The notes: generated by a model from the letters alone, not told the origin. Counted from the stretch's first letter, positions 1 through 60,665 are shown. The stretch is DNA of 64,000 nt from Monocercomonoides exilis PA203 (GCA_001643675.2 LSRY02000003.1:1984001-2048000), one strand, 5' to 3'. Translations and numbers: made by a program.

Positions 1-951
1 GCTCATCCAGGAATAAGTTGCTGTGCAACACAGCGCAGCACCACCATAGGAAGTTGAAGTTGATGTCAATTTGTTGTTTATGAACTGGCAATCATTAACC
101 AAAAACTGGTTGGGCTTGGTTCCTGGAGGCCAATGAAATGTGAGAGAACCAGCAGAATCACCACCAGAATTTGAGATGCACTTGCATTTGGAAAACAGGA
201 ATTGGCCAGATGCAGACAAGTCATTTAGCAAGAAATACCAGCCAGTTCCGCACCAGTTTGTTATTGAACAACTTTCCACTCTGTTTTCTGAGAATGAATA
301 AACAGAATTTGATTGTGGTAAGCCAACGTAAGCAGCTCCTCCATGAGCAGCTGAACAACTTGTGAAATTGGATTTTGCGATATTCACATTTAACAAATAT
401 ATACAATATAACGCTCCTCCATGATCGCTTGTTGAACAATTGTTGAATGAGCAAGAAGTGATTGTGAGATTTGCATTCGCGCAATTTACATAAAGTGCAC
501 CACCACGACTTGACCCACCAGTTGAATCGTTCCATTCACACCATTCAAAGTGATAGCTATTCAAACTAGAAAAGGACAATCTACTTAAATTCTTTCTTTG
601 AGATTCAGATCCAATATATTCACCAGGATCATTTGATGAAGAACGAGTTTGATGGAGGAAGGATGTGTTGAAGGCAGAGAGGGAAGTGAAGGGGCCATTG
701 AGGTTGGGGAGGATGGTACCATCGATGGGGTTGTGGGTGTGTTTGAAGATGGTTGAGTGGATGGAGAGGGATGAGTGAAGGGAGAAGGAGGGGATTGTAT
801 TGATGTTGATGTTGGTGGAAGAGGAAGAAGAGGAAGAAGTGGTTGAGATGAATGAATTGAGTGAGTGTGAGGGAAGAGATGGAAGAGATGGATGGGATTC
901 GGATGAGGAGATGTTTGAAAAGAGAGTATAGGAAGAGTGAAAAGAGAAATT
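1..951 (-). pseudogene. Variable beta-helix surface-protein cassette 1 (runs off left edge; no in-frame ATG in leader)
   Basis: Minus frame is open from 951 to 1 after a TAA at 954-952. It reads a Ser-rich leader then THNPIDGTILPNLN...FEWCEWNDSTGGSSRGGALYVNC...WCGTGWYFLL...GSLTFHWPP...ALCCTATYSWMS. Not in the ORF track because it has no stop inside the window. Confidence 0.85.
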
Positions 952-3000
952 TTAAAAATTCTTTTGTGTATGTTTGTGTTAAAGAAAATGAAATTGCTCA
1001 AATTGCTTCATTTTTCCTTTGAATTATTCTTTTTGATGAAATGAAATTGACTTGTGTTTTCTGCAATTAAAATGAAAATAAAAAAAAATTATAGAAATGA
1101 ATTTTTGAATCAATAATTAAAATTTCATTTTGTTTCATTTTCGCGTTTTCATCAAAAAGCGAAAAAATCATATTTACAAAAATTTTATATTTCTGGGGAA
1201 ACTGAAAGCGCAAAATTCAACAAGAAATCGAAAAATGTTCAAATGATAATTAATATTCGTTTTTCAGTTTGGACTCTTTTTTGTTCAGTATTTCCAAATT
1301 TTGAATTTTTTTTTAATTTCATTTATTTGTGAAAGAACAACTTCATTAGAATACAACTGGTGAAAGAGAATTGAAGAATGACTTTATTATTTCTTCCAGA
1401 AAAATCATTTCATTTATGACTTTTGATGAAAGAATTTTGCTGTTTATCATTTTGCAAAATTATCTTTGAAATTCATAAAAACACTTCATCTGCAATATTG
1501 ATTGATGTTTGAAATTGTGTTTGCACTGACCAATTAAATAAGTCGTTTTCATTTTGATAAAAACGGAATGTCCATGCTTGCAAACAAAACAAATTATTCA
1601 TTTGAAATTATTAATTTTGTTTTTAATTGATCGTTTATAAAAAGAAAGGAAATGGAAAAACAATGCAAATATTTCAACAATGTGTCAGGCTATTATTGTT
1701 TGAAACTCAAATAAAAAAAAATTTATTTATACTATTATTCATTGTTTCACATGAAATTATTCCTTTCCATTGAGAGGATAAATTTCATTTATATTGATAT
1801 CTCAAACATTTTGTCTTTCAATTTTTCAAAAGAAATATCAAAAGAGTATTTCAACTTTTTTTCCTTTCAAAAAAGAAGTTTAATTAATCTCAAAGAATAT
1901 TCCCATTCTTTGTTTATTCTTCAACTTTTTGTTTAAAATTTGTCACTTCAAACATTCACATTTCCAGAATCAATGTCTGAAAAACAATTGAAGGATAACA
2001 CTGAATTATTGATAATTGAAATGATTTCAAAGATAATCACCCAATATTGAACTGTTGTTATCAACAACAAACAACCTTGACAACGGAGAATATCACTCTT
2101 TTCGTTCAAAAAGAGAAAAAGATTTTGGCCTTCACAATGGATCATTTGAAGAAGAACACACAAAAAATTATTTCAAAAAGCTTCTAACAAGATTAAAAAT
2201 GTGATAATGAATATTTGACCCTGTGACTATATTCGATGAAAAGATGGTTCAGAAAAGGTGATGATAAATATTAATTGAATATTCATGAAATGATAACTGG
2301 AATGAAAATAATTAATTCATATTTTTTTATTCAGTTGAAAAAAATGATTTGGTGGAAATATCTTCGAATAAACTCATATATCAATCAAAACATCACTGGA
2401 TTGTTTCGACAGAAAATTGAGAATCCATTATTTTTGAAAATCCATTGTTCATTGCTTTACAAAAAAAGGATTCAAATAATACAGAATTTAAACGAATAAA
2501 CGAAGAAATTATCAAAATCAGTGAAGTTCTTCAATACCAAAAATTGACATTCAGAATTTCATTATTTTCAGTCAACAACAATGATTTTTAAGAGGAAATA
2601 ATTTTGAATATCAAGTTATTGTGGAGCTTGGCTTTTAATTCGTTTCAAAATGATAAATTAATAATTGTTTATAATAATCAATTTTTCATTTTCTGGTTGC
2701 AAAATAATAATTATTATTAAGGCATTTGAAGAACAAAACAAAAGAAGGCTGTTCACAAATAAAACAGGTGTTTTCGATTGAACAAAAGATTATTCAGAAA
2801 ACAAAACAGATGATAGCTTGACAATAAATGCGGTTAAAATAAAAAACTTTCTATTTCTTTGTTGGAATAGAAAGAATTTCAATTTTAAAAAGATTTGATA
2901 AAATATGAAACAAAAAGAAATTCATATTTGCAATCATAGAAATTTCTTAAAATATTGTTTTGAAAAAATAATTGTAAAACTCAACATTATATGCAAATAA

Positions 3001-4251
3001 ATGCTGAAAATATTCATTTTGATAAAATTTCATATTTTGAAGCAAATTCTCGATATTTTTCAATTGCAAAATTCAATCTCTTTCTCTCCATTCACTTCTC
3101 TCCCTTTCTTCTCTTCACTCAACAGCCCATCCACTTCTCTCTCTGCATTCAATACCTCTTTCCTCCACCAAACTCGATCTTTACCAAATGATCCTGTTGT
3201 ATATGAAGGAAATGAAACTCACAGAAAATCACCTGGAAGGTTGGGTATTTCTGAATTGAACAGTTATCTTTTTGAATGGTGCGAATGGAATTATTCAAAC
3301 AGCGGATCTTCATCTGGTGGTGCACTTTATGTTAACTGTACATATGCTAACCTCACAATAGCATCTTGTTCATTCAATAATTGTTCTTGCACAGGAAATG
3401 GTGAAGGAGGAGCAATATTCTGTCGATACTTGTTGAAAATCAGCATCATAAAATCCAATTTCACAAGTTGCTCGGCTGCACATGCAGGTGCTGCTTTTGT
3501 TGGCTGGCCACAATCCAGTTCTGTCTGGGTATTATCAGAAAACCGAGTGGAAAATTGCGAAATAACAAGTTGGTGTGGAACTGGTTGGGAAATAGTGCTT
3601 GACAATATGTCATCAAACGGTCAATTCCTGTTTTCGAAATGTGTCAGTATTGCTAATACCGGAGGTGATGCAGCTGGTGCAGTCACATTTAATTATCCTC
3701 CACCAGTAATGCCTCTTCAATATTTGCTCAAAGAGTGCCAGTTCATCAACAACAAATTGACAAGCACTTCAACTTCCTATGGTGGTGCTGGTATTCATTG
3801 CACCAGAACATCAAATTGGATGAGTGGAGTAAAATTCATCACATTCTGCTTCTTCGATGGAAACACCGCAACAAATGGAAGGGGAAACGATGTGTTCTTC
3901 AGTGGTAATGCAATCACCCAATCTCCATTTGAAAATTGTGGATCAACAACCCCAACACAAAGAGTGTGGAATGCAGGAACAGCTGACAATGCTGAATATA
4001 ATGGCTGGCTCCCCCTCATCGCCCAGAACAAAATCGTTGCCAGCAATGGAACTGATGCTGATGCCTGTGGCAGACCCCAACAAACCCCATGTGCCACCAT
4101 CGAGTATGCCCTCAACGGCTTCATCTCCCTCCTCTACGACGCCTCCCTCACCCTCCTCTCCTCAACATTTGTTCCAACTCAAACACTCACTTTCAGCGCA
4201 GTTGATACAAAATTTACTGGAAAAGATGTATTTTTTCAGGTTCTCATATAA
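3001..4251 (+). CDS. Variable beta-helix cassette 2 (short form, 416 aa; lacks the NPIDG leader motif)
   Basis: ATG-initiated ORF with FEWCEW, repeated GGAL/GGAI, CGTGW, FITFCFFDGNTATNGRGNDVFF and GTDADACGRPQQTPCATIEYAL. Family homology ends at DTKFTG (~4221). Confidence 0.8.
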   Translation: MLKIFILIKFHILKQILDIFQLQNSISFSPFTSLPFFSSLNSPSTSLSAFNTSFLHQTRSLPNDPVVYEGNETHRKSPGRLGISELNSYLFEWCEWNYSNSGSSSGGALYVNCTYANLTIASCSFNNCSCTGNGEGGAIFCRYLLKISIIKSNFTSCSAAHAGAAFVGWPQSSSVWVLSENRVENCEITSWCGTGWEIVLDNMSSNGQFLFSKCVSIANTGGDAAGAVTFNYPPPVMPLQYLLKECQFINNKLTSTSTSYGGAGIHCTRTSNWMSGVKFITFCFFDGNTATNGRGNDVFFSGNAITQSPFENCGSTTPTQRVWNAGTADNAEYNGWLPLIAQNKIVASNGTDADACGRPQQTPCATIEYALNGFISLLYDASLTLLSSTFVPTQTLTFSAVDTKFTGKDVFFQVLI

Positions 4252-5756
4252 ATTCTTTCATTTTCCATATCATAGAAAAATTCATAAGCTATCATAGCTT
4301 TTTCAATTGGAGTATATATCATCATTATTTTTTTCAGAAATCCATACCATCAACAAGACATAAATTTTTCTTCGTCATTACCTCATCTAATTTTTCTTCT
4401 CCATCAACTACAAATTAAGCTCATGAAAAAAGATTCATTGCTGTCGTATCTTCAAAATACATTTCTTCAAGCATAGCAACAATCTCTTCAAAAATATCTG
4501 TTTCTTTTGTTTCACTGATTCCAACTTGCCTGTTGGCTGTCGAAGCTCTTATCTCATTGAATTGTCCTTCAAATATCGATTTTCCAATAAATCGCTTTAT
4601 CTTTGTTTCATCTTCGATGACTCATTAAAAGTGTATCGCATTGTGAAATCTCTCGAAGATCATCGAAATAATCGTTAATTATAAATGTTGTTTTCTGTCT
4701 TGTTCTTTCTGTTTTCTGTAATTCTTTTAATCTCAAAATAAATAATGTAGATTCGATCTTCATGGGTTGTGCACCAGAGGATCAACTTTTCTTGGCTTAA
4801 TATAGTTCTCTCATTTTCATCCTACTTCAGCTGGCATTCTATGTCAGAATGAACATTTCTTTTGTGTTTCAGAAAAGAAAATAAAAGATAACGCTTGGCC
4901 CTGAATTCGAGGGGAGTTGAATGAATTTGAATAAACATTATTTTTACCGATCATTGAAGAAGGCGTTGAAGAATACGATGAAAATGAAATCAAATAAATT
5001 CGTTCAAATTGCCTTTTTTCATCATTAGAATCGTGAATGAAAAATGAAAAGAAGGACAATTTTGCGATTGATCTGCCGAGCAGAAGAAAAGAGAAGGAAA
5101 TAATTTTCGTTTCAATTTTGTGGAGCTGTATATTGGAGCGTATGAACACAATAGAAGGTCGATAGCCTGATCCTACTCGTTGAAAGTGAAAACGTTATTG
5201 AAGGAGCTGAAGAAGAAGAAAATGACAAAATTGAAGTTGGAGGAGTTTGGGGGAAAGGACAAGACGCAGAAGAAATAACAGAATTTGAAGAAGATGAAGA
5301 AGACGAGAAGATTGAGAGACGAACAATTAGTCAAATAACATTTCCGAAGAAGATGATGAAAATGACTCGTATGATGTTGTCAGTTGGTTAAACGTCACAT
5401 TTGATAAGTTGACTTCGGAAGAAATATAAAAACTTCGATCATAAAAAATATTGGCCAATTCGCATTTATTTGTCAATGAAAACTGATATCCTCAGTTCAT
5501 TGGCAAACTTTGTGTGATTTCATTGCCTTTCTCTCCAAAAACAAAAAATTATGATGTTTGTCTGTTGGCTCTGAAAAAATACAAACGATATAAATATCTG
5601 ATGAAGATATTGACAAAAAAGAAGACGCAGATGAAGAAGCGGCAGAAGAAAAAGAAAACAGAGAAAAATTTGGAGGAAGAGTCAGAATATAATGCAGAAG
5701 AAGATTGTTTTGCTTGTTTTGAGATTGATGGTGACGGATCAGTTGATAAAGACAAA

Positions 5757-6050
5757 GAAGAAGAAGAAGAAGAAGAAGAAGAAGAAGAAGAAGAAGAAGA
5801 AGAAGAAGAAGAAGAAGAAGAAGAAGAAGAAGAAGAAGAAGAAGAAGAAGAAGAAGAAGAAGGAGGAGGAGGAGGAGGAGGAGGAGGAGAAGAAGAAGAA
5901 GAAGAAGAAGAAGAAGAAGAAGAAGGAGGAGGAGGAGGAGGAGGAGGAGAAGAAGAAGAAGAAGAAGAAGAAGAAGAAGAAGAAGAAGGAGGAGGAGGAG
6001 GAGAAGAAGAAGAAGAAGGAGGAGGAGGAGGAGAAGGAGGAGGAGAAGAA
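5757..6050 (+). repeat. Compound (GAA)n/(GGA)n trinucleotide microsatellite
   Basis: About 290 bp of pure purine made of alternating GAA and GGA blocks. Confidence 0.98.
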
Positions 6051-6183
6051 TAAGAATAAGAAGAAAAAGAAGACGAGGAAGAGGAAATAGAAGAATTGGA
6101 AGAAGACGGTGATAATAAATGAATTGATGAGTTGATTGAAGATTGAGAATTGTGACGATTATAAAAATCGAACAACAAAGGAG

Positions 6184-7551
6184 ATGTTCGTAGAAATCGT
6201 TAATTTCTGGTTTTTCAACTCAGAGTTCATCTGGCAAACAAAAACTCTCCAAATATTTTTCGCATTCATCTCAACCATCTTCCTCCACACCCACAACCCC
6301 ATCGATGGTGCCATTCTCCCCAACTTCAACGCCCCTGCCACTTCTCTCTCTGCCTTCAACACCTCTTTTCTTCACCAAACACGTTCTTTGTCAAATGCTC
6401 CTGTTGTGCATGTTGGAACTGAATCTCAAAGAGTGAAACTTAAAAGATTGGATTATTTTGATCTGAACAGTCATCGCTTCGAATGGTGCGAATGGAATGA
6501 TTCTAATAGCGGAAGTGCCTGGGGAGGTGCACTGATAGTTAACTGCACAGACGCAAATCTCACAATAGAATCTTGTTCTTTTCGCAATTGTTCAACGACT
6601 GGGGAAGCAGGAGCGTTATACTGTGGGCAACTATTGAAATTAAACATTGAAAAATCCAACTTCACCAGCTGTCAAGCTATGCATGGAGGAGCAGTCACTT
6701 CTTGGGCTCCTCAATCAAATTCTGATTGGTCATTCTCAGAAAACAGAGTGGAAAATTGTTCAATAACATACTGGTGCGGTACTGGATGGTTCTTTTACAT
6801 TGGTGATTTTTCTTCAAACGGTCAATTCCTGTTTTCCAAATGCAAGTGTATCGCAAATTCTGGTGGAGACTCAACGGGTGCTTTAACATTTCAAAATCCG
6901 CCAAGCAACAAACCTAGTCAGTTTTCAATTAATGAATGTCAGTTCATCAATAATAAATTGACAAGTTCATCGTATTATGGAGGTGCTGCAATTTTCTTCT
7001 ATTCAACTTTTTCCTGGATGAATGGAATGAAATTCATCACATTCTGTTTCTTCGATGGCAACACTGCCACAAATGGCAGGGGAAACGATGTGTTCTTCAG
7101 TGGAAGCAGCATCACCCAATCTCCATTCCAGCAATGTGGCTCAACGACTCCATCAAAAAGAGTGTGGAATCAAGGAACAGCTGAAAACGCTGAATATAAT
7201 GGCTGGCTTCCAATCATCAATCAGAACAAAATCGTTTCTAACAGCGGAACTGATGTCGATGCCTGTGGCAAAACACAGCAAAGCCCATGTGCCACTGTGG
7301 AGTATGCTCTCGGATGCGTTGCTCCCTTCAGCGATGCATCCCTCTCTCTTCTCGTCTCCACTTTCACTCCCACAAACACTCTCACATTCCGTGCCCCAAA
7401 TACAAAAATTTATGAAAATGATGAATTTTTTCTGTTTTCATCAGAATTTCTTCCATTTATTAATTTTGAATATTTTCCATATCAGAGAAATATCCTACAC
7501 CTATCATCTTCTTTTCAATACGAGAACATATCATCGCTTATCTTTCATTGA
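6184..7551 (+). CDS. Variable beta-helix cassette 3 (short form, CGKTQQSPC...GCVAPF C-terminal type)
   Basis: Same framework. The family start context ttcgATGaaatc reads ttcgTAGaaatc here, and the nearest in-frame ATG is 6184. Homology ends at ~7410. Confidence 0.7.
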   Translation: MFVEIVNFWFFNSEFIWQTKTLQIFFAFISTIFLHTHNPIDGAILPNFNAPATSLSAFNTSFLHQTRSLSNAPVVHVGTESQRVKLKRLDYFDLNSHRFEWCEWNDSNSGSAWGGALIVNCTDANLTIESCSFRNCSTTGEAGALYCGQLLKLNIEKSNFTSCQAMHGGAVTSWAPQSNSDWSFSENRVENCSITYWCGTGWFFYIGDFSSNGQFLFSKCKCIANSGGDSTGALTFQNPPSNKPSQFSINECQFINNKLTSSSYYGGAAIFFYSTFSWMNGMKFITFCFFDGNTATNGRGNDVFFSGSSITQSPFQQCGSTTPSKRVWNQGTAENAEYNGWLPIINQNKIVSNSGTDVDACGKTQQSPCATVEYALGCVAPFSDASLSLLVSTFTPTNTLTFRAPNTKIYENDEFFLFSSEFLPFINFEYFPYQRNILHLSSSFQYENISSLIFH

Positions 7552-9171
7552 GCCCAAAATCAGCCCAGATGAAAATATTTCTTCGAAATTTCTTCATCCA
7601 ATTTCTCCTTTTCATCAAATGAAAATTAAGCTCATGAAAAAAGAATAGTCTATTTCTTCTCTTCAACATGCATTTCTTCGATCATATCAGAAAGTTCTTC
7701 AAAAACATTTATTTTCTCAACTTTCCGATTTCAAAATTTTCGTATCAAATAAGAGCAAGAATCTCTATAATTTCTCTTCAAATATGCCTTTTCCTCTCGA
7801 TTCCTTTTCTTCTTCATTTCATTTTCTGCAATTCGCTGTTGCTTCGTAGCTGTGTAATCAGTCGAAGGCTATTTTCAAACTCATTCATTCCAAACAAAAA
7901 TTGCTTTTATACCATTTCCTTTTCACTTCATATGCTTGAGTTTAAAAATAATATAAGTCAGAATTGATTCAGTTGTTGATAACGTGCAAACTTTTCTTTG
8001 CTTTGTGCAGAATCACTTCCGTGGAAATATAACTTCAGTTGATATTTTGTGAAAGAATGAATAATCATTTGTGCTTCTGAACGAAATGAAAGATGATGCT
8101 TGGCCCTGGATTTAACGGGAGTTGAATGAAACGTAAAAATCAACATTATTTTTGTAGATCATCGAAGAAGGAGTTGAAGAAGAAGTTGATTTGAATGAAA
8201 TGAATGAATTTGTTTAAATCGCCTTTTTTCATCAAGAGAATCGTGAATGAAAAATGAAATGAAAGCATTATTGGTGAACGTTCGTTGAGAGGAAGAAAAG
8301 TGAATGAAATAATTGTTAGTTCAATTTGTCTGCGATTCCATTTGCACAGCTTAAATGCAACAGAAGGTCGATGATCTGATCCAATGCAAAGTTAGTGAAT
8401 ATGGCATTGAAGATGTTGGAGATATGGTAAAGATTGCACAGTCTGTGGGAAATGACTAGACGCAGAAGAATTTGAAGAATTTGAAGAAGATGAAGAAGAC
8501 GAGATGAATGAGAGATGAACAATCAGTCAAATAACATTTCTGAAGAAGATGATGAAAATGACTCGTATGATGTTGTCAGTTGGTTAAACGTCACATTTGA
8601 TAAGTTGATTTCAGAAGGAATATAAAACCCCAATCACAAATAAAATTGGCCAATTCGCATTAACTTGTCAATGAAAACTGATATCCTCAGCTCATTTCCC
8701 AACTTTGAGTGGTTTCATTGTCTTTCTCTTCAAAAACAAAAAATAATGATGTTTGAATACTGGCTCTGAAAATACAAAAGGTATCAAAAGAAGATGAATA
8801 CGAAGATGAAGAGGAAAAGGAAGAAGTTGAATAAGGTGAAGAATATGTTGCAGAAGAAGATTGTTTTGCTTGTTTTGACGTTGATGGTGATAAATCAGAC
8901 GATAAAGAAGAAGAAAATGAAGATAATGAAAAAGGAGGGGAAGGAGAAGGAGAAGGAGTGTTGTGTGCAGAATATCTCTGTCGGAGAAATAGAAGCTTAG
9001 GGATTGCATTTCTCCGAATGAGAATGTTCTCATTGGTTTATTTTAGAATTCATAGGAAGAAGAAGAAAAATTGGAAGAAGAAGAAGGTGATGATAATGAA
9101 TGAATTGATGAGTTGATTGAAGGCTGAGATTTGAGAAAATGTATAATTACAAATAAAATCTGAGTGTTTCG

Positions 9172-11526
9172 ATGAAATTTCTATTTTTTCTCTTCTTTTC
9201 TTTTGTTTTCTTTTGACAAATAAGATCCTCCACCTTATCCTTCTATATCCGCTCATCCATCTTCCTCCACGCTCACAACCCCATCGATGGAACCATCCTC
9301 CCCAACCTCAACAGCATATTCACTTCTCTCTCTGCCTTCAACGCTTCTTTCCTCCACCAAACACGTTCTTCATCAAATGGCCCTATTGTGCATGTTGGAA
9401 ATGAAACCAACAGAAAGAAACCTGGAAGATTGTTTGATTTTGATCTAAACAGCCATCGCTTTGAGTGGTGCGAATGGAAAGATTCAAATGGAGGAAACGA
9501 TCATGGAGGCGCACTTAAAGTTAGTTGCACAAATGCAAATCTCACAATCGCTTCTTGCTCATTTCACAATTGTTCAACCACAGGTAATTATAATGGCGGA
9601 GCATTGTATTGTAATCGTTCGTTGAAGTTAATTATCATCCAATCCAATTTTACAAGTTGCTCTGCATTACATGGAGGAGCTGCAGAAATAATATATCCTC
9701 AAACAAATTCTGTTTGGTTATTCTCAGAAAATAGAGTGGAAAGTTGTTCAATATCTGGCTGGTGTGGAACTGGTTGGTATTTTGCTCTAAATAATAATCA
9801 GTTAAATTTTCAATTTCTGTTTTCCAAATGCAAGTGCATCTCAAATTCTGGTGGTGATGCTGCTGGTTCTTTGACATTTGCAAATCCACCAATTAATAAA
9901 CCAGAGAAATTTTTGGTTGATGATTGCCAATTTATTAACAACGAATTGACTGCTTCTTCCACATATGGCGGCGCTGCAATTTTCTTCTATTCAACTTATT
10001 CCTGGATGAATGGAATAAAATTCATCACATTCTGCTTCTTCGATGGCAACACTGCCAAAAATGGCAGGGGCAATGATGTGTTTTTCAGTGGAAGCAGTAT
10101 CACCCAATCTCCATTTGAGAATTGTGGATCAACAACCCTATCGAAAAGAGTGTTTAATAATGGAACAGCAGACAATGAAACTTTCAATGGCTGGCTCCCC
10201 CTCATTGCCCAGAATAAAATTGTTGCCAGCAATGGAACTGATGCTGATGTCTGTGGCAGACCCCAACAGACCCCATGTGCCACCATCGAGTATGCCCTCA
10301 CCGGCTTCATTTCCCTCCTCCAAGACGCCTCTCTCACCCTCCTCACCTCAACATTTGTTCCTATTCAAACACTCACTTTCAGCGCAGTTGATACAAAAAT
10401 CACTGGAAATGGCACAACTGCCACCACCATCGCCTCCAGTGGCATTCCCCAACCACAAAACTCACATTCACACTCATCACAATCAACATCATCTCTTTCC
10501 TCATTTTCATCATTTTCATCTGCATCTTCTTCACCAGATCCATCTGCCTCGTCTGCCCTCTTCCAACAGACCCAGGGCTCCCTCACAGTCTCTGCTCTCG
10601 CCATCGCCCACAACTCCTCAAACCCCATCACCCCCATCCTCTTCCACCTCTCCGGTAACTCCCCTTCCCTCAACCTCAACACAACCACCATCACCGGAAC
10701 AACCTCCATAACAATCAAAACACCCCTCTTCTTCCTCACTGCTGGCTCCCTCGCCCTCAACCACACAGCAATCACTCATCTCACCCTCTACAGCCAAAGC
10801 ATCTTCCACCTCACCTCCCTCACCGCTCCCCTCACCCTCAACTCCTCCAACATCACCGGCATCACCTCCACAGCAACTCCCATCAGCTGTGTCCTCTCCT
10901 CTGCCACCTCCCCTGCCCTCTCCCTCTCCCTCGCCAACTGCACCATCACCAACATCGACTCAGCTCCACAAAACCAACAGACTGCCACCAATGGCGGGTG
11001 CATCTCATTCGCCTCATCTTCCACTGCCAACACATTTTCTGTGAGGAACTCCACCTTCTCCAGCTGCTCTGTGAGCGAGGATACAAGTTCTGGAGGAAAA
11101 GGCGGCGCTCTCATGGTTGAGTTCAATGAAGGCTCACAAGTGTCATCCACAACCTTTTCCATCACCAATATCGTGTTTTCAGCCAACAAGGCCAGTGTCG
11201 GAAGAGATATGTATTTTGTGTGTGAATCATTTGTCGCTTCTGTGAAAGAGCCCTTGTTCGCCTTCATGAGAAGCATCACTCAGAAAGACAACTCGGCTGT
11301 TGGACATGACAGAACAGAAGCATTCGGTGATTGGAATGTCGATTTGTTTATATTTCTCAACGGGCGTACAGCTGACAATGAATGCGTGGATGGTCATCTT
11401 GGCATCAAAGCAATGAATTGCTGGCTATCAAAGATGCCCTTCAAAAGCACACAAAATGCGATGGGTTTTCTGAAGAAGGTGCAGATCATAAGGCAGAAAT
11501 CATTTCATCAGCTGACTTGTCGGTGA
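9172..11526 (+). pseudogene. Variable beta-helix protein copy 4, LONG form, with in-frame TGA in the signal peptide
   Basis: ATG 9172 gives MKFLFFLFFSFVFF*QIRSS...HAHNPIDG, with TGA at 9214-9216 where copy 9 has TTA (Leu). The frame continues into the 712-aa ORF, which extends past KITGN into a Ser/Thr-rich beta-helical region and NKASVGRDMYFVC. Confidence 0.8.
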
Positions 11527-49549: not shown

Positions 49550-51013
49550 TATTTAATTGTAATTTTGTCATAAAGCAAAGTGCGTTTTTCTTTTGAAAAG
49601 TCGCAAATATTTAATTATCAGGTTCATTGAAATTTTGCATTTTATCATTAATTCTTTCAATTGAAATGTCATAAAGAACCCTTTAACAAATTGTGATTTA
49701 AAAAATTTCCAGTATTTATTAATGTTTATTTCAGTCAACTTAGACAGATCGATTGTTTGAATTCAAGTTGAAAAATCAAATTTCGATTAAATTGAAAATT
49801 GAATATTGCCGACTTTTCAAAAAGAATAACACAAATGAGCTTATCAAAACGGACTCGAGAATAAAAAAATACTCGTGAAAAAAAATTGAAAACTCAATTG
49901 AAAAACAAATTAATGAAAAACATTTCAAGAACAAAAGAAGTTTAAAAACAATATGATAAAAATGTTTAGTTTTATTATCAAAAAATCTTTGAATATTCAA
50001 TTCTGCTTTTTTATTTAAAAAGAATTATTTGTGTTTTCAGAAATAGATTTCATCATGTTTAAATATTTTTTTGACTGAAATGTTTTTATTAACGATTTCT
50101 GCTGGTTTGTTAAGTTTTGATATTTTGATGATCAATAATAAATCTTCCATGAGTTTTTGGCAAGGTTGAAAAATTAATTTCATTTGGATGTTTTTCAATC
50201 AGAAAACACAAGAAAAAATAGAGGCTCAAAGAAAATAAAAAAATACAATTTCACAATAGAATAACTTTTTATAAAAAAAAACTTGAATGAAGACACATTG
50301 ATGTGGCTGAAAAATAAATGAAAAAATGAAATCAGTTCAAAATTCTGATAATTCGTTTTTGACTCTTGAATGTTTCAGAGTGATAAACTTTGTGATAGAA
50401 ATAGCTCAAAAAGATTGAAAATGAGTCGATAACAGAGAGATATTTTTGTGTGAAAAAGAAACAAACTATTCAATAAAAATAACATTTTATACCCTATATT
50501 ATAATTTTTGATTATCTTTTGAAATAACAAATAAAAGAAAAACAGAGAAAAAATGTTTTGAAAGCGAAAAACAAACAAACAAAAAATATTCATGAAACTC
50601 TGAAATGTGAAATCAACAAACATATTCAAAGTCATCGGCACAAAATGTTCATTGGAAGATAAGAAAACAAAGTTGTTTTGTTCTTATCATCAATGGAGTT
50701 CTTTGTAAGGAAAAAAGGCAATGAGAATGCTTAATGATAATTCATGGATTTGTTCCAATGGATATTTAAAAAAAAATATATTTGTGGTTTCTATCGAATA
50801 AAAAATTATTCCTCAAATAACTTACACATTGAAAAACACATCGCACATTTCGCGCTCTCTCCCTCTTTCTTTTCCTATTCCATCGCATGCTCATCCACGT
50901 GCAACCTTCCAAAGAAAATAACTCATTGTCGTAACATGTTCTTTGTTTTTCATTTTCAATCTGATTAGAAATATTGAACGAAAAAGTTTGTTCAACTCAA
51001 ACAAATTTCTGTA

Positions 51014-53314
51014 ATGTATCTGTTATTGCATTCTTTCTCCATCCACTCAACCATCTTCCTCCACACTCCCAACCCCATCGATGGCGCCATTCTCCCTTCC
51101 CTCAACAGTCCATCCACTTCTCTCTCTGCCTTCAACACCTCTTTCCTTCACCAAACACGCTCTTCTCCAAATGATCCCGTTGAATATATTGGAAATGAAA
51201 CTCACAGAGAGAAATTAAAAAGATTGTCCTTTATTGAATTGAACAGCTATCTCTTTGAGTGGTGCGAATGGAATAATTCAAATGGAGGAAATGATTATGG
51301 AGGTGCTCTAAAAGTCAACTGCACGAATGCCAATCTCACAATCACTTCTTGTTCATTCAATAATTGTTCAACAAATGGATCCAATGGTGGAGCGTTATAC
51401 AGTTACTGTTTGCAAAATGAGAACATTGCAAAATCAAATTTCACAAACTGTTCGGCATTGCATGGAGGAGCAATTGCTATAGATGGTCGACAATCATCTT
51501 CCGTTTATTCATTTTCAGACAACAGAGTTGAAAGTTGTAAAATCACAAGTACAATTGGAACTGGTTGGTATTTCTATATTGGTGATTTTTCTTCAAACGG
51601 TCAATTCCTGTTCACCAAATGCAAGTGCATTGCTAATTCTGGTGGTGATTCTGCTGGTTCTCTCACATTCAATTGGCCTCCACAAAACAAACCAAGTCAA
51701 TTTTTGATCAATGATTGTCAATTCACAAATAACAAACTGACTGCTTCTTCCATATATGGAGGTGCTGCAATGTGTTTCCTTCCACCATATTCCTGGATGA
51801 ATGGAGTAAAATTCATCACATTCTGCTTTTTCGATGGCAACACCGCAACAAATGGAAGGGGAAACGATGTGTTCTTCAGTGGTAATGCAATCACCCAATC
51901 TCCATTTGAAAATTGTGGATCAACAACCCCAACACAAAGAGTGTGGAATGCAGGAACAGCTGACAATGCTGAATATAATAGCTGGCTCCCCCTCGTTGCC
52001 CAGAACAAAATCGTTGCCAGCAATGGAACTGATGTCGATGCCTGTGGCAGACCCCAACAGACCCCATGCGCCACCATCGAGTATGCCCTCAACGGCTTCA
52101 TTTCCCTCCTCCAAGACGCCTCTCTCACCCTCCTCAGTTCAACATTTGTTCCAACTCAAACACTCACCTTCAGCGCGGTTGACACAAAAATCACTGGAAA
52201 TGGCACAACTGCCACCACCATCGCCTCCAGTGGCATTCCCCAACCACCAAACTCACATTCACAGTCATCACAATCAACATCATCAAATTCATCCTTGTCA
52301 TCATCATCAACATCTTCTTCACCAGATCCATCTGCCACTTCTGCCCTCTTCCAACAGACCCAGGGCTCCCTCACAGTCTCTGCCCTCGCCATCGCCCACA
52401 ACTCCTCAAACCAAATCACCCCCATCCTCTTCCACCTCTCCGGTAACTCCCCTTCCCTCAACCTCAACACAACAACCATCACCGGAACAACCTCCACACC
52501 AATCAAAACACCCCTCTTCTTCCTCACTGCTGGCTCCCTCTCCCTCAACCACACAGCAATCACCAGTCTCACCCTCAACAGCCAAAGCATCTTCCACCTC
52601 ACCTCCCTCACAAATCCCCTCACCCTCAATTCCTCCAACATCACTCACATCACCTCCACAGCCACCCCTACCAGCTGTGTCCTCTCCTCTGCTTCCTCCC
52701 CTGCCCTCTCCCTCTCCCTCGCCAACTGCACCATCACCAACATCAACTCAGAACAATTCAGCCAACAGACTGCCACCAATGGCGGGTGCATCTCATTCGC
52801 CTCATCTGCCCCTGCCAACACATTTTCTGTGAGTGACACAGCCTTCTCCAGCTGCTCTGTGAGCGAGGATACAAGTTCTGGAGGAAGAGGCGGTGCTCTC
52901 ATGATCGAGTACAAGGATGATTCAGAAGTGTCAACCACAACCTTTTCCATCACCAATATCGTGTTTTCAGCCAACAAGGCCAGCGTCGGAAGAGATATGT
53001 ATTTTGTGTGTGAATCCCTTGTCGCTTCTGTGAAGGAACCCTTGTTCGCCTTCATGAGAAGCATCACTCAGAAAGACAACTCGGCTGTTGGACATGACAG
53101 AACAGAAGCATTCGGTGATTGGAATGTCGATTAGTTTATATTTCTCAACGGGCACACAGCTGACAATGAATATGTGAATGATCATCCTGGTATCAAAGCA
53201 ATGAATTGCTGGCTATCAAAGATGTCCTGCAAGAGGACACAAAATGCGATGGATCTTCTGAAAAAGGTGCAGATCATAAGGCAGAAATCATTTCATCAGC
53301 TGACTTGTCGGTGA
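51014..53314 (+). CDS. Variable beta-helix protein copy 12, LONG form (706 aa to a premature TAG at 53132-53134; homology continues to TGA 53314)
   Basis: Colinear with copy 4. GTC GAT TAG here corresponds to GTC GAT TTG in copy 4, and the downstream frame still matches copy 4 to HQLTCR*. Confidence 0.8.
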
Positions 53315-53784
53315 ATTTATGTGCAAATGAAGGCAAAGTCGAAGAAAGTTGGGGAGATGGCACACAAAATTGAAGAAAACATCTCATATGTGCATTTGAT
53401 GAAATCAACATTGCTTGTCGGGCATTTATTCTCTTCTTTCATAGAATTATCCATTAAATATGCCTTTTCAAATAAATATGTTTCCCTCATCGTTTCATCT
53501 TCTCCGACATATTGAAGGCGTGTGACGTTGTGTAACCTGCCGAACGCTATTTTTGAGCTCATTCATTTCATAAAAGAATTGCTCTAATACTCTTTCTTTT
53601 TTATCTGCGCCTCTTTCAGCTTCCAAATAAAAAAAGGCAAAATCGTCCTCCTTTTTTGATTTCGCTCCGACTGATCAGCTTTTTTCGACTCGAAATCACC
53701 TCTATTGCTATTTAAATTTGGCTACATTTTGTAATAGAATGAATAATCCTTTTGTGCTTCCGAAAAGAAAATAAAAGATGACAA

Positions 53785-56700
53785 TTGGCCCTGAATTCGA
53801 TGGGAGTTGAACGAACTGAAAAAAACAGTATCATTTTTGATGTTCATCGAAGAAGGAGTTGAAGAAGAAGAAGAAGAAGAAGAAGAAGAAGAAGAAGAAG
53901 AAGAAGAAGAAGAAGAAGAAATGGTTGACTGAAGAAGATTTTGCGTGTTTTTGGCCATGCGATTCATAACAGGTGTGCTTGTCGCTGAATAAGCAAGTGA
54001 ATTGTGAGAAAGCGAATTTTGTGTTTGTAAATCGAGAAATGAGGAAGATGATCGATTGAATGAAGGAGGATTATCAGAAGACTACGACGAAGAAGAAGAC
54101 GAAGAAGAAGGAAACGATGAGGAGGAAGAAGAAATGATGTGACAGAGAAGTGTGCAATCAGTCAACTGGCATTACTGAGAAAGATGATGAGAACGCTTTG
54201 TGCGATGTCGTTGGTTGGCCAAAACGTCTCACTTGATGTATAAACTTCTGATTGGCTTGAAAAATTCAATCACAATATTTGTGACGAACAGATTGTGGAA
54301 ATCACTCTTGCTGTATTTCTTCAAAGTCAATTCACTTTCTTTTTGCGATTTCCTCTCCTTTCCCCTCAAAAACAAATAATGAAAATATTTCTTAATTTCC
54401 ATTCCTTTCCAATTTTCCTCTTCCATTCAGCTCGCAAAATCATCAAAAATATCAATCCCCTCCTTTTCTTCATCTTTCCCCATCTCTTCCAAAATACCTT
54501 CTCCTCTCATAAAAAAACACCCCTTTCCATTTGAACACTTCAGAATATTCCTCCTCTTTTCCACTTTAACCCCTTTTCTTTCTTTTCAAAATCCATATCT
54601 CCAATCAACAATCAGTCCTCTTTCATCATCCCCAGTCACTTCTCTACATATTTTCTACATTTTCCTCCAAATTTCCACTTGCTCTTCCCCACCCCTTTGT
54701 CTCAGAATTTCTTTCATTCAAAAGCCCCTCTTGAAATATAAACATTCAAAAAAACAAGCAACTCCCACCCCCTGCCACAAAAAATATTCTTCCATCTCTT
54801 CTCTGCCCCATATTCCACCTGTGCAAGGTGTTGATGAGATAAACATCAAATACTTCTTTTGGTGGTTGAGAATATTATTAAAGGAGATGATCATGCCAAA
54901 AACAGAAAAAACCCCTCTGGACATCCACCACAATGTGTACGGGCTGAGAAGACCCTCCAGTGAGATATACAATGTATTTTGTGGAGATGCATTCCGTGCT
55001 GTATTCAATCATTCTGAGACTGAAATGAAGAGATTGATTTATTTTTTGAATGATGATTGTTGTGGAAATGAGGGTGTTTGGCAAAACACAGTCGAAGTTC
55101 AGTTTGACATTTATTTATTTTTATTTATATGAATATTTGCCTTTTGATGTATTTTGTGTTTCTTTCAGGGCAGGAAGTGGAAAAGAATGAAAATGAATGA
55201 AAGCGGGATATCTCGTTGTGCATGGTGGCTATGGAGTTGGGAGAGCGAATTCATATGGAAAGTGCCCAGGGTGAAGGGATTGGGAAGGGAATTGGAGATG
55301 ATATTTTCCGACGAAAAACAGGACATTTTTCAATGATGAGAATGGAATTTGAGCAGAAATCAAAAATTTCACATTTTCAGAAGAGCAAGAAATCGCTGCA
55401 TTTGATGGGGAAATGACTTCTGGAAAGGATTATTTGCGAATCAGATGATGAAACATTCGAAAAAGGAAGGAATTATGAATTTTTATTGAGGGGAAACAGT
55501 TGCCAATTGGATAAAATAGAGTTATTGACTTGAGCATTGGTTCTGAAGGTTTGATATTGTTATTTTTTGAAGTAATTATTATTTTGTTTTAAGAATGCTG
55601 AAAGAATGAAGGATTAGATGGCTTTGAAGAAGAAAAGTTGGGAAGGAAGAATAAAGAAGGACAGATGAAATGCGAGATATTTCGAAGATGCTTGGCATTG
55701 GGCTTTGACAAATAATTATTTTTGAGGAAAGATAATTTGAGTGAAATAAGGGAAGTGAAAGAAGAAGGCATGGAATGAAAAAGGGAACGCTCAATTTTTC
55801 ATATTTTTAGATGGAAAGAGAGAAAGAGATTGAGCTGAAAGTGAAAAATGTTCAGAGGCTATTGTTTGCAAGAAGAAAAAGGAACATAAGAAGAGAATTT
55901 CAATGAATTTCTCCGTTGACATTAATTGACGCTCATCTTCTCAATTTTCAACAATTAATAATCACATTCAATCCGTTCATCATCATCATCTTCTTCAAAT
56001 ATATCAACAACATTTCACACGCTTCTTCTTCTTCTTCATTCACTTCATCTGATCGAATTTCTTCATGATCTGTTTCATCGTCAGAGATCATGAACGAAAT
56101 GAAGAAACGGAGAAATTTTGCGGCTGAAGGAAATAATCAGAAATAAAAACAAGAGTTAGAAGAAGAATGAAAGAAGAGGAGAAAGAGAAAGAGAATGAGA
56201 ATGAAGAGCGTGTTTTGAGAGGAGAACTGGAAAGGAAATAGAATAGAGAAAATGGAAGAGGGGTTTTTTGAATGAAAGGAAGAAGATGAATGAATTTCAA
56301 ATATGAGTTGGAAATAAAATTTGAGAAGAGAAGGAAGGTTGAACAGCACAAAAGAGATTATTTGGATAAGAAAAGGAAGATGCTTGAGAAGCGAAAAAAT
56401 TGAAAAGCAGAACAACAAAGAAGACAATACGATGAATTACAAGAGAAATCAAAAATATGAAAAAAGAGAGAAAAGAAGGAAAGAGATGAGAGGCGATGAT
56501 AAAGAAAGAAAAAATGAGAGTAAGCCAGCTATTGAAAGTCTGATAATCTGCAGTTTTATTAATCTGCATTCTTTTTGCTTGGGTTGTTGAGCCACATTGC
56601 TGGAATGGAGATTGAGTGATGGAATTACCATTGAAAAACACATCATTCCCTCTGCCATTTTTGGCAGTGTTTCCATCGAAAAAGCAGAATGTGATGAATT

Positions 56701-57863
56701 TTATACTATTCATCCAGGAATAAGTTGCTGTGCAACACAGCGCAGCTCCTCCCCATGAAGTTGAAGTTGATGTCAATTTGTTGTTTAAGAACTGACAATC
56801 ATTAACTAAAAATTGATTTGGTTTATTTTGTGGAGGCCAACTGAATGTTAAAGAGCCAGCAGAATCTTTACCAGAATTAGCAATGCACTTGCATTTGGAA
56901 AACAGGAATTGAGCATTAGAAGGCATGCTTTCGAGCCTAAAATACCAGCCAGTTCCACACCAATCAGTTATTGAACAACTTTCGACTCTGTTATCTTGGA
57001 ATGTCCAAACAGAATTTGATTGCGGATACCATGAGGTGACTGCTCCTCCATGAGCAGCTGAACAGCTCGAGAAATTGGATTTTGTGAGAGAGATTTTCAA
57101 CAAATTTTGACAGAATAAGGCTCCTCCTTCGTCGCCGCTCGAACAGTTGAAAAATGAACAAGAGCTGATTGAGAGATTTGCATTCGTGCAAGAAACATGC
57201 AGTGCTCCACCCCAGTCACTTGATCCACTGCTTGAATCATTCCATTCGCACCACTCAAAGAGATAGCTGTTCAAACCAGTAAAGGGCAATCTTTTTAATT
57301 CCTTTCTTTGAGACTCAGAACCAATATATTCAACGGGATCATTTGATAAAGAACGTGTTTGGTGGAGAAAGGAAGTGTTGAAGGCAGAAAGAGAAGTGGA
57401 TGGGTTGTTGATGTTGGGGAGGATGGCACCATCGATGGGGTTGTGGGTGAGGAGGAAGATGGTTGAATTGGAGGATTTTGCTTGCAAGAAAAACAAACAA
57501 AAATGAAAGAAGAAAAAATGATTTCATCGAAAATCTTAGTTTTTATTTATATTCATTTCCGCAAATCTCAACCTTCAATCAACTCATCAGTTCATTCATT
57601 TTCATCACATCACACAGCTTCTTCTTCGTCTTCTTCGCCTTCTTCAACTTCTTCAACTCCATTAACCTCTTCTTCTTCTCCACTCTCTTCGTCGTCTTCG
57701 CCTTCTGCTGCTTCATCTTCGTCTTCTTCATTTTCATCTTTTTTATTTTCTTCCTCTTTTCCTTGCTGTTTAATTCCTTCAACCATCATCGTTTTCCCAT
57801 GAATTCCAAAATAAGCCAATGAGAACATTCTCATTCAGAGAAATGCAATCTGAAAGCTTCTAT
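53785..57863 (-). repeat. Right arm of the ~4.1 kb inverted repeat
   Basis: Reverse complement of 41228-45304. Confidence 0.95.
56297..57527 (-). pseudogene. Variable beta-helix cassette 13 (inverted duplicate of cassette 10)
   Basis: ORF translations are identical to 41564-42794, including the same leader frameshift. Confidence 0.85.
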
Positions 57864-59415
57864 TTCTCCGACAAACTTATTCAACATGTTAAAAGTCTTC
57901 TCATTCTTTTTCATTTTCGTCGTCTTTATCATCTGATCCATCACCATCAACCTCAAAACATGCAATACAATCTTCTTCTGCAACATATTCTGACACTTCC
58001 TTCTAATTTTTTTTCTTCTCCACCTTCTTCGTCGACTTCGCCTTTATCTTCGTCGTAATCATCATCATCTTCTTCTTCACCTTCTTCATTGTTTCCTTCA
58101 TCACCTTCTTTTTTTTCTTCTACTGCTTCTTTATCTTCGTATTCATCTTCACTTCTATCTTCATCAGATATTTATATCGTTTGTATATTTTCGGGCCAAT
58201 GGACAAACATCATTATTTTTTGTTTTTGAAGAGAAAGAAGAGGCAACCACACAAAGGCAGTCAATTTACTTGAGAAAATCCAATTTTATAAAGTTGCATC
58301 AATATGTCCATCACTATAATGGAGATTATGAAATTCTTTTTCAACCAAAATCAACCTATCGAAAAAGTTTTTTATAATCAACTGACAACACACATAACAC
58401 CATCCTCCTTCTGCGGAAACATTTTTGCATTTTTTATATATTTCTCAAACACCATAAATATTTATCTTCCCCTTCTTCTTCTTCACCTTATTTGTCATTT
58501 TCCTCGTCATTTTCCTCGTCATTTTCTTCGTATTCTTCTTCAACTTCTTCAACATCTTCAATATCTTCTGCGTCTTGTCCTTTCCTATCAAGTGCACCAT
58601 CTTCAAATTCGTATTCTTCTTCAATGCCTTCTTCGATGAAAAACAAAAATAATCTTGATTTTTTCATTTCATTCAACCACCCTCAGACTTTACAGCACGC
58701 TTCGCCTTCAGCATCAATTTGGAAACACAAAAAGAATATTCATTTAATCGCGGAATAACAGCCGAAATTATGAGACAACGAAATGAAAGTAATTTTTAGA
58801 GGAGAATAGGCTATTAGCAGCGCAAAATAAAAAAAAAAAAGGAAGATAGGTTTGACTTTTTTCATTTGGAAGCTGAAGCATTTGCAGTGAAAACAGAAAG
58901 GGCATTGAAGCGATTTTTGTTTGGAATGACTGGGTTCCTAAATAGACTTCGGCAGGTTACACATCTACGAAACTGGAGCAAATTGTTGGAAATGAAATGA
59001 AGAGGAAAAGGAATTTAGAGGGAAAGGCTTATTTGAAAAGAAATTATATGAGATTCTTGCTCCAATTGGATACTAACAAGTTGGAATAAGAAAGCTGATG
59101 AAAATTGATGTTTTTGAAAAACTTTCTGATATGATCGAAGAGAGGAAAACGGAATATTGCATTCTACAATGAGATTTATTATCAATCAAAAAAAAAAAAA
59201 AAAAAAAGAAAGAAAGAAAGAAAAAGAAAAAGAAAAAAAAAGAAAGAAAGAAATAATAAGATGAGGAAATTGAGAAGAAATATTTTTATATGAGCTAATG
59301 TTAAGGATTTTGAAAGAAAAGTATTGATATATGATTTAGTTGAAAAAGCAATGAAAGCTCAAGAAATTTTATATGATATGGAAAAAATCACAACAAGATG
59401 AAACGTTTGAGGAAA

Positions 59416-60665
59416 TTACAAGGAGATTAGAAAAGCGTCATCATTTCCAGTGATTTTTGTGTCAACCGCGCTGAAGGTGAGTGTTTGAGTTGGGACAAAT
59501 GTTGAGGAAAGGAGGGTGAGGGAGGCGTCTTGGAGGAGGGAAATGAAGCCAGTGAGGGCATACTCGATGGTGGCGCATGGGGTCTGTTGGGGCCTGCCAC
59601 AGACATCAGCATCAGTTCCGCTGTTAGAAACGATTTTGTTCTGGTTGATGATTGGAAGCCAGCCATTATATTCAGCATTATCAGCTTGTCCATTATTATA
59701 CACTCTTTTAGTTGGAGTTGTTGAGCCACAATTTTCAAACGGAGATTGTGTGATGGCATTACCACTGAAGAACACGTCATTTCCTCTTCCATTTGTGGCA
59801 GTGTTTCCATCGAAGAAACAGAATGTGATGAATTTTACTCCACTCATCCAAGTGAAGGTGTTTGTGCAACACAGCGCAGCTCCTCCGCGTGAAGATGATG
59901 CACTTGTCAATTTATTATTTATGAATTGGCAATCATTAACCAAAAATTTCTCTGGTTTATTTTGTGGAGGAGTATTGAATGTGAGAGAGCCAGTTGAATC
60001 GTTACCAGTATTTGCAATGCACTTGCATTTGGAAAACAGGAATTGGCAAGTTGAAGTCATATTATTGAGCCAGAAATACCAACCAGTTCCACACCAGCTG
60101 GATATTGAACAATTTTCCACTCTGTTTTCTGAGAAGGACCAATCGGAAGTGGATTGTGGATAAGCTATTTCAACAGCTCCTCCATGTAAAGCGGAACAAT
60201 TTGTGATATTGGATGTTGTGATGTTAACGTTTAACAGATAAAAGCAATCTAATGCTCCACCATTGTGTCCTTTTGCCGAACAATTGTTGAACGAACAAGA
60301 AGTGACTGTGAGATTTGCATTTGCACAATCGATACAAAGTGCACCTCCACGACTTGTTTCACTTTTTGAATCATTCCATTCGCACCATTCGAAGAGATAG
60401 CTATTCAATTCAGTAAAGGATAATCAACTTAATTCTTTTCTTTGAGATTCAGATCCAATGTATTCAACGGGATCATTTGATGAAGAGTGTGTTTGGTGAA
60501 CAAAAGAAGCATTGAATGCAGAAAGAGAAGTAGATGGGCTGTTGAGGTTGGGGAGGATGGCACCATCGATGGGGTTGTGAGTGTGGATGAAAATGATTGA
60601 ATTGGAGGATTTCACTTGCAAGAAAAACACACAAAAATGAAAGAAGAAAACCAGAAAAATGATTT
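59416..60665 (-). pseudogene. Variable beta-helix cassette 14 (start codon lost; in-frame TGA at 60426-60424)
   Basis: The ttcgATGaaatc context reads ttcgGAGaaatc. It has KELS*LSFTELNSY where cassettes 8 and 10 read KELRRLSF and KELKRLPF. The rest is the 330-aa ORF. Confidence 0.85.

Follow-up and report, generated by a model that had tools for sequence, protein, structure and literature searches.

The window analysed here is a stretch of 64,000 nucleotides (nt) from Monocercomonoides exilis PA203 and corresponds to C25:1984001-2048000 (GCA_001643675.2, LSRY02000003.1) of an 82.3-Mb genome in 101 contigs. Fourteen copies of one domain of ~390 codons were located in the window; the queries were the unit near 51-54 kb (blastn) and the full-length protein encoded at L002:782-9475 (tblastn). 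Thirteen of these copies are distinct, in agreement with the 14 paralogues described in a first-pass annotation made from the sequence alone; copy c13 is identical to c10 and is its palindromic duplicate. With somewhat more confidence than doubt, the copies are interpreted here as germline fragments of the N-terminal beta-helix head of a family of giant receptor-like pseudokinases, the tyrosine-kinase-like (TKL) family of M. exilis, and the arrays that they form as an evolutionary reservoir of head variation. Proteins of the window are 64-83% identical to entries named "uncharacterized protein MONOS_..." from Monocercomonoides exilis, and each of the 18 whole-domain homologues looked up (18/18) is from this organism. 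The motif encoding FEWCEW occurs 340 times in the genome, compared with 0 occurrences for the control.

Relative to the full-length protein, the window copies are 68-74% identical in amino acid sequence (tblastn E down to 0) and map to residues ~290-682, with c04 and c12 reaching ~1120. Residues 1 to ~235-290, at the signal-peptide end, are missing from all copies, as is everything past residue ~682 or ~1120, so that the stalk, the transmembrane (TM) segment and the kinase tail are absent. An in-frame upstream ATG is found in about 6 of the 13 copies. No frameshift is present over the ~380 codons of any copy, and a single stop was found inside the domain among the 13 distinct copies (in c14); c07 has one farther upstream. 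The earlier description of the copies as truncated or start-less with stop-free domains is borne out to this extent. The invariant framework described there was recovered as well. All of the listed motifs are present (NPIDG, FEWCEW, GGAL, SNFTSCSA.HGGA, NRVE.C.I..WCGTGW, QFLF.KCKCI.NSGGD.AGSLTF, CQF.NNKL and KFITFCFFDGNTATNGRGNDVFF), and they are 90-100% conserved in a genome-wide codon alignment of 96 copies (14 from the window and 82 from elsewhere, of at least 340 copies), with short patches of high variability in between.

The short fragments on the plus strand are c02 (3118-4221, residues 317-681), c03 (6238-7419, residues 288-682), c08 (35802-36947, residues 300-680) and c09 (38262-39437, residues 292-682). 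In c02 the leader MLKIFILIKFHILKQ... replaces NPIDG, and the tail reads KFTG and then KDVFFQVLI before the stop. Copy c08 is start-less and has a 5' junction of its own kind. An in-frame ATG leader precedes c09 in an open reading frame (ORF) at 38199-39488, and the best genome-wide relative of this copy is 85% identical in DNA. The short fragments on the minus strand are c06 (17391-18530, residues 301-681, with an in-frame ATG leader and an ORF at 17337-18614), c07 (20213-21562, residues 237-682), c11 (45985-47322, residues 237-680, start-less) and c14 (59443-60609, residues 296-682), in which the leader ATG is lost (GAG). The tail of c07 reads KITGN and then DDAFLISL before the stop, and its upstream region is Ser-rich like that of the full-length genes. 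Two long fragments are found on the plus strand. Copy c04 (9220-11715, residues 286-1120) is start-less, with a stop after the leader ATG, and ends with the stop after ...KKVQIIRQKSFHQLTCR that is common to all long copies; c12 (51026-53503, residues 291-1120) has an ORF with an ATG at 51014-53134, and no other copy has upstream sequence like that of c12. Copy c05 (12925-13869, plus strand, residues 301-611) is broken early at its 3' end and has the in-frame ATG leader MKSFFLLPFSLIFLQIK from 12841. Copies c10 (41616-42599, plus strand, residues 296-621, leader ATG out of frame) and c13 (56492-57475, minus strand) lie in the left and right arms of a palindrome, respectively. Copy c01 (4-948, minus strand, residues ~235-548) is cut by the window edge, has no stop in its translation, and continues upstream into the Ser-rich region known from the full-length genes.

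The same head is found elsewhere in the genome in single open frames of 2,000-3,100 residues, and at least 34 complete genes with the head are present on many contigs. The order in L002:782-9475 and L003:68-8893 is signal peptide, Ser-rich stretch, NPIDG/FEWCEW head, further repeats over more than 1,800 residues, hydrophobic TM segment and cytoplasmic tail. Full-length proteins of ~2,900-3,100 residues comprise a signal peptide, the head, a beta-helix stalk, a TM segment and a kinase C-lobe. The cytoplasmic tail matches the C-lobe only of PF07714 (positions 158-258, E = 3e-9). Because neither HRD nor DFG motifs were seen by eye in the tail, the tail is likely to be a pseudokinase. The complete receptors most likely serve to sense ligands in the gut.

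This family is the published TKL family of M. exilis. TKL kinases were reported as the largest gene family of the organism, with 332 predicted members (PMC6759080), and the family was reported to overlap the 28.9 Mb of "unclassified repeats" in the genome (PMC8767320). Only the kinase classification is given in PMC6759080 and PMC8767320; the beta-helix ectodomain, the head-only fragments, their territory on C25 and gene conversion are not described there. The system had been called apparently undescribed, which does not hold for the family itself but does hold, with respect to those papers, for the ectodomain, the fragments and the conversion. With the N-terminal head of the TKL proteins, to which they are homologous, the window copies share 65-85% DNA identity. 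Complete members carry the TM segment and the kinase, whereas the window copies carry neither and are fragments rather than full members.

C25 is 2,548,433 bp in length; it begins with CCCTAA repeats and finishes in TTAGGG repeats that extend over at least 3 kb. Since telomere repeats are present at both ends, C25 is a complete telomere-to-telomere chromosome, the largest of ten reported, and the window lies ~0.5 Mb from its right telomere. The genome was searched with the head and the best 123 matches were scored. Of these, 62 are at C25 beyond 1.5 Mb, and only 2 of the 62 are full length; in the rest of C25 and on the other contigs, most head matches are full length. The territory of head fragments covers ~1 Mb (C25:1.52-2.51 Mb) and reaches about 40 kb from the telomere. 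A query with the cytoplasmic tail gave 88 matches in the genome, about 70 of them in giant frames, and within the territory it found only the full-length gene at 1.896 Mb. In this territory, amplification has affected only the head. Head copies on contig C98 (25.6 kb) score identically to those at C25:1581632-1590630, and part of the territory may be present a second time in C98, as an uncollapsed haplotype or as an assembly duplicate.

The units are organized in tandem and inverted arrays and are separated by a common non-coding block and GAA-rich low-complexity DNA. The non-coding block (B block; 53439-53889, plus strand) follows most units, and the median identity between its copies is 68%. 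Other B blocks are located at 7851-8185, 11646-12096, 37299-37737 and 39755-40206 and, on the minus strand, at 16619-16950, 19433-19695, 45104-45554 and 58600-59051. An inverted duplication has its left arm at 39653-45304 (plus strand) and its right arm at 53780-59153 (minus strand). Two stretches of the arms, of 0.84 kb (39653-40490 with 59153-58316) and of 4.1 kb (41228-45304 with 57850-53780), are essentially identical; a diverged block inside the arms (40491-41227) is about 75-85% identical. The palindrome spacer of 8.5 kb (45305-53779) holds c11 and c12. The identity of the c09 and c14 units starts about 215 nt downstream of the c09 domain, and the domains themselves are 76% identical. 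The palindrome is unlikely to be an assembly artefact, because the arms flank a unique spacer and contain the diverged internal block. The C25 territory contains nine or more pairs of head copies that have equal scores, are oppositely oriented and lie 4-17 kb apart (among them 1547310/1553369, 1520572/1528700, 2050356/2065280, 2121034/2127983 and 2500473/2505483), and inverted duplications like that of the window therefore recur in the territory. The 24%-GC centre of the palindrome spacer contains a nest of inverted repeats of 46-80 nt (49305-49836), up to 89% complementary and 50-412 nt apart, which could be a foldback element or an element resembling a miniature inverted-repeat transposable element (MITE).

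The fold of the head was modelled for c09 with AlphaFold2 from an alignment of 39 paralogues. The predicted local distance difference test (pLDDT) value is >80 over residues 70-320, and the strand pattern is regular. Comparison of the model with 48,161 PDB representatives using VIA-align gave a cyanophage tailspike as the best match, with a Z of 18.5 and a root-mean-square deviation of 3.4 Å over 237 residues. Z values of 15-18 were obtained for many other right-handed parallel beta-helices, including the passenger of the Vag8 autotransporter (16.6). Foldseek against the PDB provided weak matches only (E at least 0.03), all of them to beta-helices. The head models as a right-handed parallel beta-helix, the fold that had been proposed from its motifs. 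In sequence searches of the window proteins, no family was found in Pfam and NCBIfam at E values up to 1, and no match was found in the PDB.

GGAL, GGAI or GGAV appears on at least four rungs, and FSEN, FINN and FDGN are read directly in the window copies. The chlamydial Pmp/POMP proteins likewise form a right-handed beta-helix whose rungs carry GGA(I/L/V) and FxxN-type motifs, and bacterial POMP-repeat proteins were reached with phmmer via repeated short matches (P0029, E = 2e-22). However, the window proteins match neither PF02415 nor TIGR01376, whereas P0029 matches both in the same searches. Chlamydial Pmp proteins have an autotransporter barrel; the full-length M. exilis proteins end in a TM helix and the kinase C-lobe instead. 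The resemblance to Pmp thus stands for the motifs and the fold but not for the family profiles or the barrel.

The 36 most variable codons lie largely in register directly after the GGA-type motif on six successive rungs, at residues 96/98, 125-128, 150-154, 184-189, 216-220 and 252-253 of c09. On the model, this is the arrangement expected of a binding face that has diversified. The 3' end of the head, at nt ~930-1100 of the domain alignment (for example, 39200-39380 of the window in c09), is of two sharply distinct types, ...GRPQQTPCATIEYAL.GFISLLQDASLTLL.STFVPTQ and ...GKTQQSPCATVEYALGCVAPFSDASLSLLVSTFTPTN. Because the two types occur irrespective of the sequence elsewhere in the domain, the 3' end is a dimorphic module.

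Recombination among the copies was detected by several methods. The pairwise homoplasy index (PHI) of the ten complete window domains is 0.597, compared with 0.693 ± 0.0045 for permuted data, and 0 of 1000 permutations were as low. The values for 34 full-length genes are 1.132 and 1.175 ± 0.006, respectively (0 of 300 permutations). Recombination-free simulations (n = 15) on the inferred tree with the observed spatial rate profile gave a z of 0.31 ± 0.76, compared with the observed -21.8. A GENECONV-like scan covered nt 1-900 only, and column permutations were used to set its family-wise threshold of 5%; it replaced a first run that was inflated by the conserved, dimorphic 3' part of the domain. 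Globally significant tracts were found in 67 of 1540 fragment-fragment pairs, 16 of 561 pairs of full-length genes and 28 of 1904 pairs of a full-length gene with a fragment. The tracts have a median length of 77 nt (range 39-354) and involve 72 of 92 sequences.

Exact tracts of 154, 141, 140, 120, 81 and 71 nt are shared within the window by copies that are otherwise ~77% identical. The 154-nt tract covers a leader and domain start at 12815-12968 (plus strand) and is identical to 18487-18640 in c06 on the opposite strand. The 141-nt tract at 3862-4002 in c02 (plus strand) is identical to 51839-51979 in c12, and the 140-nt tract at 9733-9872 in c04 (plus strand), in a variable part of the domain, is identical to 13399-13538 in c05. 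Farther away, a 242-nt tract of c11 is identical to the fragment L050 at C25:2.05 Mb. The full-length gene L007 (C25:1.79 Mb) has tracts identical to c06 (150 nt, in a variable part) and to c14 (195 nt). Full-length, membrane-anchored members that share segments with the fragments therefore exist, and the patchwise exchange between copies proposed earlier is real and extends to the full-length genes.

In the maximum-likelihood tree, which has a star-like shape, fragments are intermingled with full-length genes. Each variable segment has 64-79 distinct amino acid variants among 92-94 copies, and most of the window variants are unique in that sample. The variation looks like point divergence shuffled by conversion and not like a small deck of cassettes, and the combinatorial use of cassettes suggested in the first-pass annotation was not recovered.

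Pairwise ratios of nonsynonymous to synonymous divergence (dN/dS) were obtained by the method of Nei and Gojobori. The values are 0.25 for the window, 0.25 for the full-length genes and 0.26 for fragments genome-wide, and the closest independent pairs give the same picture. The framework codons have a dN/dS of 0.08, alike in the window, the full-length genes and the fragments. For the 36 most variable codons the value is 0.8-0.95, although these codons were chosen for variability. The 20 codons of the face have a dN/dS of 0.77 (0.65-0.90) on local dS and 1.67 (1.41-1.99) on gene-wide dS; the latter value exceeds 1 because dS itself is raised in the variable patches. Positive selection at the variable sites is thus not demonstrated, since dN/dS is not above 1 against local dS, and the data fit old variants that are kept and moved around.

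The B blocks in the flanks are 68% identical, compared with 64.5% for third codon positions and 83% for first and second positions. About 9-10 stops per copy would be expected in an unconstrained frame of 1,140 nt, as estimated from a nonsense fraction of ~4%. Compared with this expectation, the one stop in 13 copies implies that the domain is selected in the fragments or is continually overwritten from selected genes. The domain stays open next to flanks that are ~32% diverged. The ratio of nonsynonymous to synonymous singletons is 5.6 in fragments and 3.7 in full-length genes (p = 0.11), with both values biased upward by synonymous saturation; for the framework the ratios are 7.25 and 3.74 (p = 0.05), subject to the same bias. 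These ratios hint at a slight relaxation in the fragments.

The reading favoured above can be stated as a sequence of steps. One or a few truncated units would have arisen and then have multiplied locally through segmental duplications, some of them palindromic. Ectopic gene conversion of short tracts, frequent and also reaching the complete genes, would keep the heads intact, and selection on the complete genes, perhaps also on the fragments as donors, would contribute. Exchange would shuffle the variants of the in-register variable face, and the arrays would serve as a de facto reservoir of receptor-head variation on an evolutionary time scale. Mechanistically, the arrays represent an unusually specialised form of birth-and-death evolution with ectopic conversion: head-only, on a megabase scale and on a chromosome arm. 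Tandem and inverted duplicates, truncated members, mosaic tracts and in-register variable positions, by which a birth-and-death cluster is recognized, were all found.

Several points weigh against this reading. The 96 copies were picked by score, which favours intact copies, and 13 of 46 fragments sampled elsewhere carry stops, so some copies do decay. Fragment-fragment exchange is seen in 4.4% of pairs, compared with 1.5% for exchange between fragments and full-length genes; because fragments exchange more among themselves, passive refreshing from selected genes may not suffice, and direct selection on fragments is possible. The evidence for conversion comes from one reference genome and an evolutionary time scale, and the tracts do not tell donor from acceptor. 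RNA data were available as Logan contigs from four RNA libraries of one study, labelled "synthetic metagenome". RNA contigs cover stretches specific to c08 and c09 without mismatch at a depth of ~10, compared with ~4-19 in the spacers; judged by depth, weak transcription is not distinguishable from DNA carry-over or from the effect of k-mers that paralogues have in common. Bins of the conserved motifs reach depths of hundreds to a thousand, which represent the whole family. Joints between c08 and c09 in the RNA contigs were rejected as RNA mosaics; they are short k-mer bridges, probably from other paralogues.

A dedicated donor-cassette system was considered as an alternative, in which the silent heads of C25 would be copied often during clonal growth into a few expressed receptor genes and would rewrite the ligand-binding face. 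The exposed head would then vary clonally, in the manner of antigenic variation or of VLR-like diversification. Donors that are truncated at both ends and mostly start-less, yet open, would suit such a system, as would an archive of heads only in a ~1-Mb territory extending to about 40 kb from a telomere, the tracts identical to L007, a full-length gene embedded in that territory, and the placement of the variable residues on one face. It is nevertheless unlikely. No single expression site is apparent, as the complete genes number at least 34, have diverse heads of their own and are spread over many contigs; no conserved recombination signal was found flanking the tracts; most variants are unique rather than reused; the single reference genome gives no somatic evidence; the lifestyle is that of a host-associated commensal; and the cytoplasmic pseudokinase tail fits signalling and not a coat protein.

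The analogy drawn earlier with Borrelia vls/vlsE, Neisseria pilS/pilE and Trypanosoma brucei VSG holds in part. Copies without starts or ends, a framework with variable segments, mosaics from short-tract conversion and arrays towards a chromosome end are shared with those systems. However, vls, pilS and VSG rely on a single expression site or very few, whereas M. exilis has dozens of dispersed complete genes, lacks defined flanking recombination repeats and produces receptor-like proteins with a cytoplasmic pseudokinase. Agnathan VLR genes, the other precedent invoked, are incomplete in the germline and are completed somatically with flanking cassettes; this does not apply to M. exilis, whose assembly has the full-length genes complete, each as a single open frame. 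By analogy, the arrays seem closer to the truncated paralogues of plant clusters of nucleotide-binding leucine-rich-repeat (NLR) and receptor-like protein (RLP) genes, or to var/VSG archives, than to a one-locus switch.

Another alternative takes the fragments for ordinary genes that are expressed as short beta-helix proteins, secreted or soluble (a signal-like leader, the head and a stop), such as lectins or decoys, and that are kept by direct purifying selection; this is likewise improbable. Constraint on the domain equals that in the full-length genes, and relatives elsewhere have in some cases been annotated as proteins. An in-frame ATG with a hydrophobic stretch is present in c05, c06 and c09 in the leader that is commonest in the window, but the ATG is out of frame in c10 and c13, and the leaders of c04 and c14 carry a stop. 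Genome-wide, the commonest leader motif occurs 15 times, always within C25:1.52-2.43 Mb. Because ATG is present in only 2 of these 15 leaders (c05 and c06), with GAG, CTG or TTG in the others, the start codon is not conserved. The RNA contigs are not enriched over the spacers.

The ends of the fragments also argue against short secreted proteins. At least five unrelated kinds of 5' junction were found, namely a Ser-rich continuation, FFLQxK-SSNS, MLKIFILIKFHILKQ, FHIDFLIHTT and FKRFLFFII.... At the 3' end, short copies in the window and elsewhere have one common breakpoint, at which ...KITGN is followed by a read-through resembling D.FFLISL. Stops lie 7-45 codons past this breakpoint, and the length of the C-terminal tail is not conserved. 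The kinds of 5' junction pair variously with short and long 3' ends, which implies crossing-over or conversion inside the domain. An intron at the break after KITGN was rejected because the junction lacks a GT and the sequences regain homology only where they are non-coding.

Capture by mobile elements, in which Pack-type or Harbinger-related non-autonomous transposons would have spread the head fragment, is highly unlikely. One annotated relative (P0011) is fused to a HARBI1-like nuclease, and the 5' and 3' breakpoints are sharp and recurrent. Against this, no terminal inverted repeats were found around the units in three window regions beyond low-complexity matches, and no transposase-like ORF was found in the spacers between the units of the window. 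The contiguous arrays with common spacers, together with the confinement of the commonest leader to one part of C25, point to local duplication and not to dispersal. A source of double-stranded RNA, in which inverted pairs would form hairpins and small RNAs regulating the family, for example by mutual exclusion, would draw on the recurrent inverted duplications of the window and territory but has no need for open frames or for a framework dN/dS of 0.08, and it is very improbable.

Other features of the window lie between and beside the fragment clusters. A divergent relative (28-40% identity) of the membrane-proximal ectodomain, corresponding to residues ~1900-2477 of the L002 protein and resembling that of another subfamily, extends over three frames at 23763-25822. 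It is followed at 26038-26310 by a TM-like segment, ...IVEIVCVVFVVLLLVIVAILAV...; the region 23763-26310 represents a short receptor gene with introns or else a pseudogene. At 30256-34494, between the two fragment clusters, lies what appears to be an ordinary gene of several exons. It has protein-kinase-like exons at 30256-31372, and the long ORF that follows contains low-complexity runs of Ser/Pro/Glu and, at its C-terminal end, armadillo repeats (PF00514, E = 4e-7). The right-hand limit of the fragment cluster is a GC-rich (58%) gene at 61308-63539 with an IQCH-like ATP-grasp domain (PF24923, E = 8e-30). Very long low-complexity runs of the GAA/CTT type, such as those at 5500-6220 and 18670-19300, are found upstream of many units. 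They read as poly-Glu/poly-Lys in one frame and as poly-Leu/Ser/Phe on the other strand, and they might be recombination-prone spacers.

Plant NLR and RLP gene clusters evolve by birth and death, unequal crossing-over and gene conversion, and their truncated paralogues are a source of variation. The M. exilis arrays share with them tandem and inverted germline clusters, truncated members, hypervariable solvent-exposed positions in register, and mosaic exchange. The fold differs, being a leucine-rich repeat (LRR) in the plant proteins and a beta-helix in M. exilis. Unlike the plant clusters, M. exilis has a single domain amplified to a ~1-Mb territory, with frames that are unusually well kept. 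Another gut protist, Entamoeba histolytica, likewise has a large receptor-kinase family, EhTMK, with variable ectodomains and many truncated copies; the EhTMK B1 family is reported to have 35 members, only six of them full length (PMC2880585). The EhTMK ectodomain consists of Cys-rich CXXC repeats rather than a beta-helix, and the EhTMKB1 copies are at least 95% identical, compared with ~75-85% in M. exilis. No megabase-scale array of heads only is known for EhTMK.

Part of the ~29 Mb of "unclassified repeats" of M. exilis, which the literature ties only loosely to "tyrosine kinases", can now be described as head-domain fragments of giant beta-helix receptor-like proteins. The interpretation provides a concrete, testable model for the diversification of a very large surface-receptor repertoire in a free-swimming gut commensal. 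The beta-helix with an in-register variable face would be a new scaffold to set against the systems based on LRR and on Cys-rich repeats. If switching occurs, the arrays would represent a new kind of programmed, conversion-based receptor diversification on a beta-helix scaffold in a commensal amitochondriate protist. Without switching, they would be an unusually clean case of gene fragments maintained indirectly by conversion.

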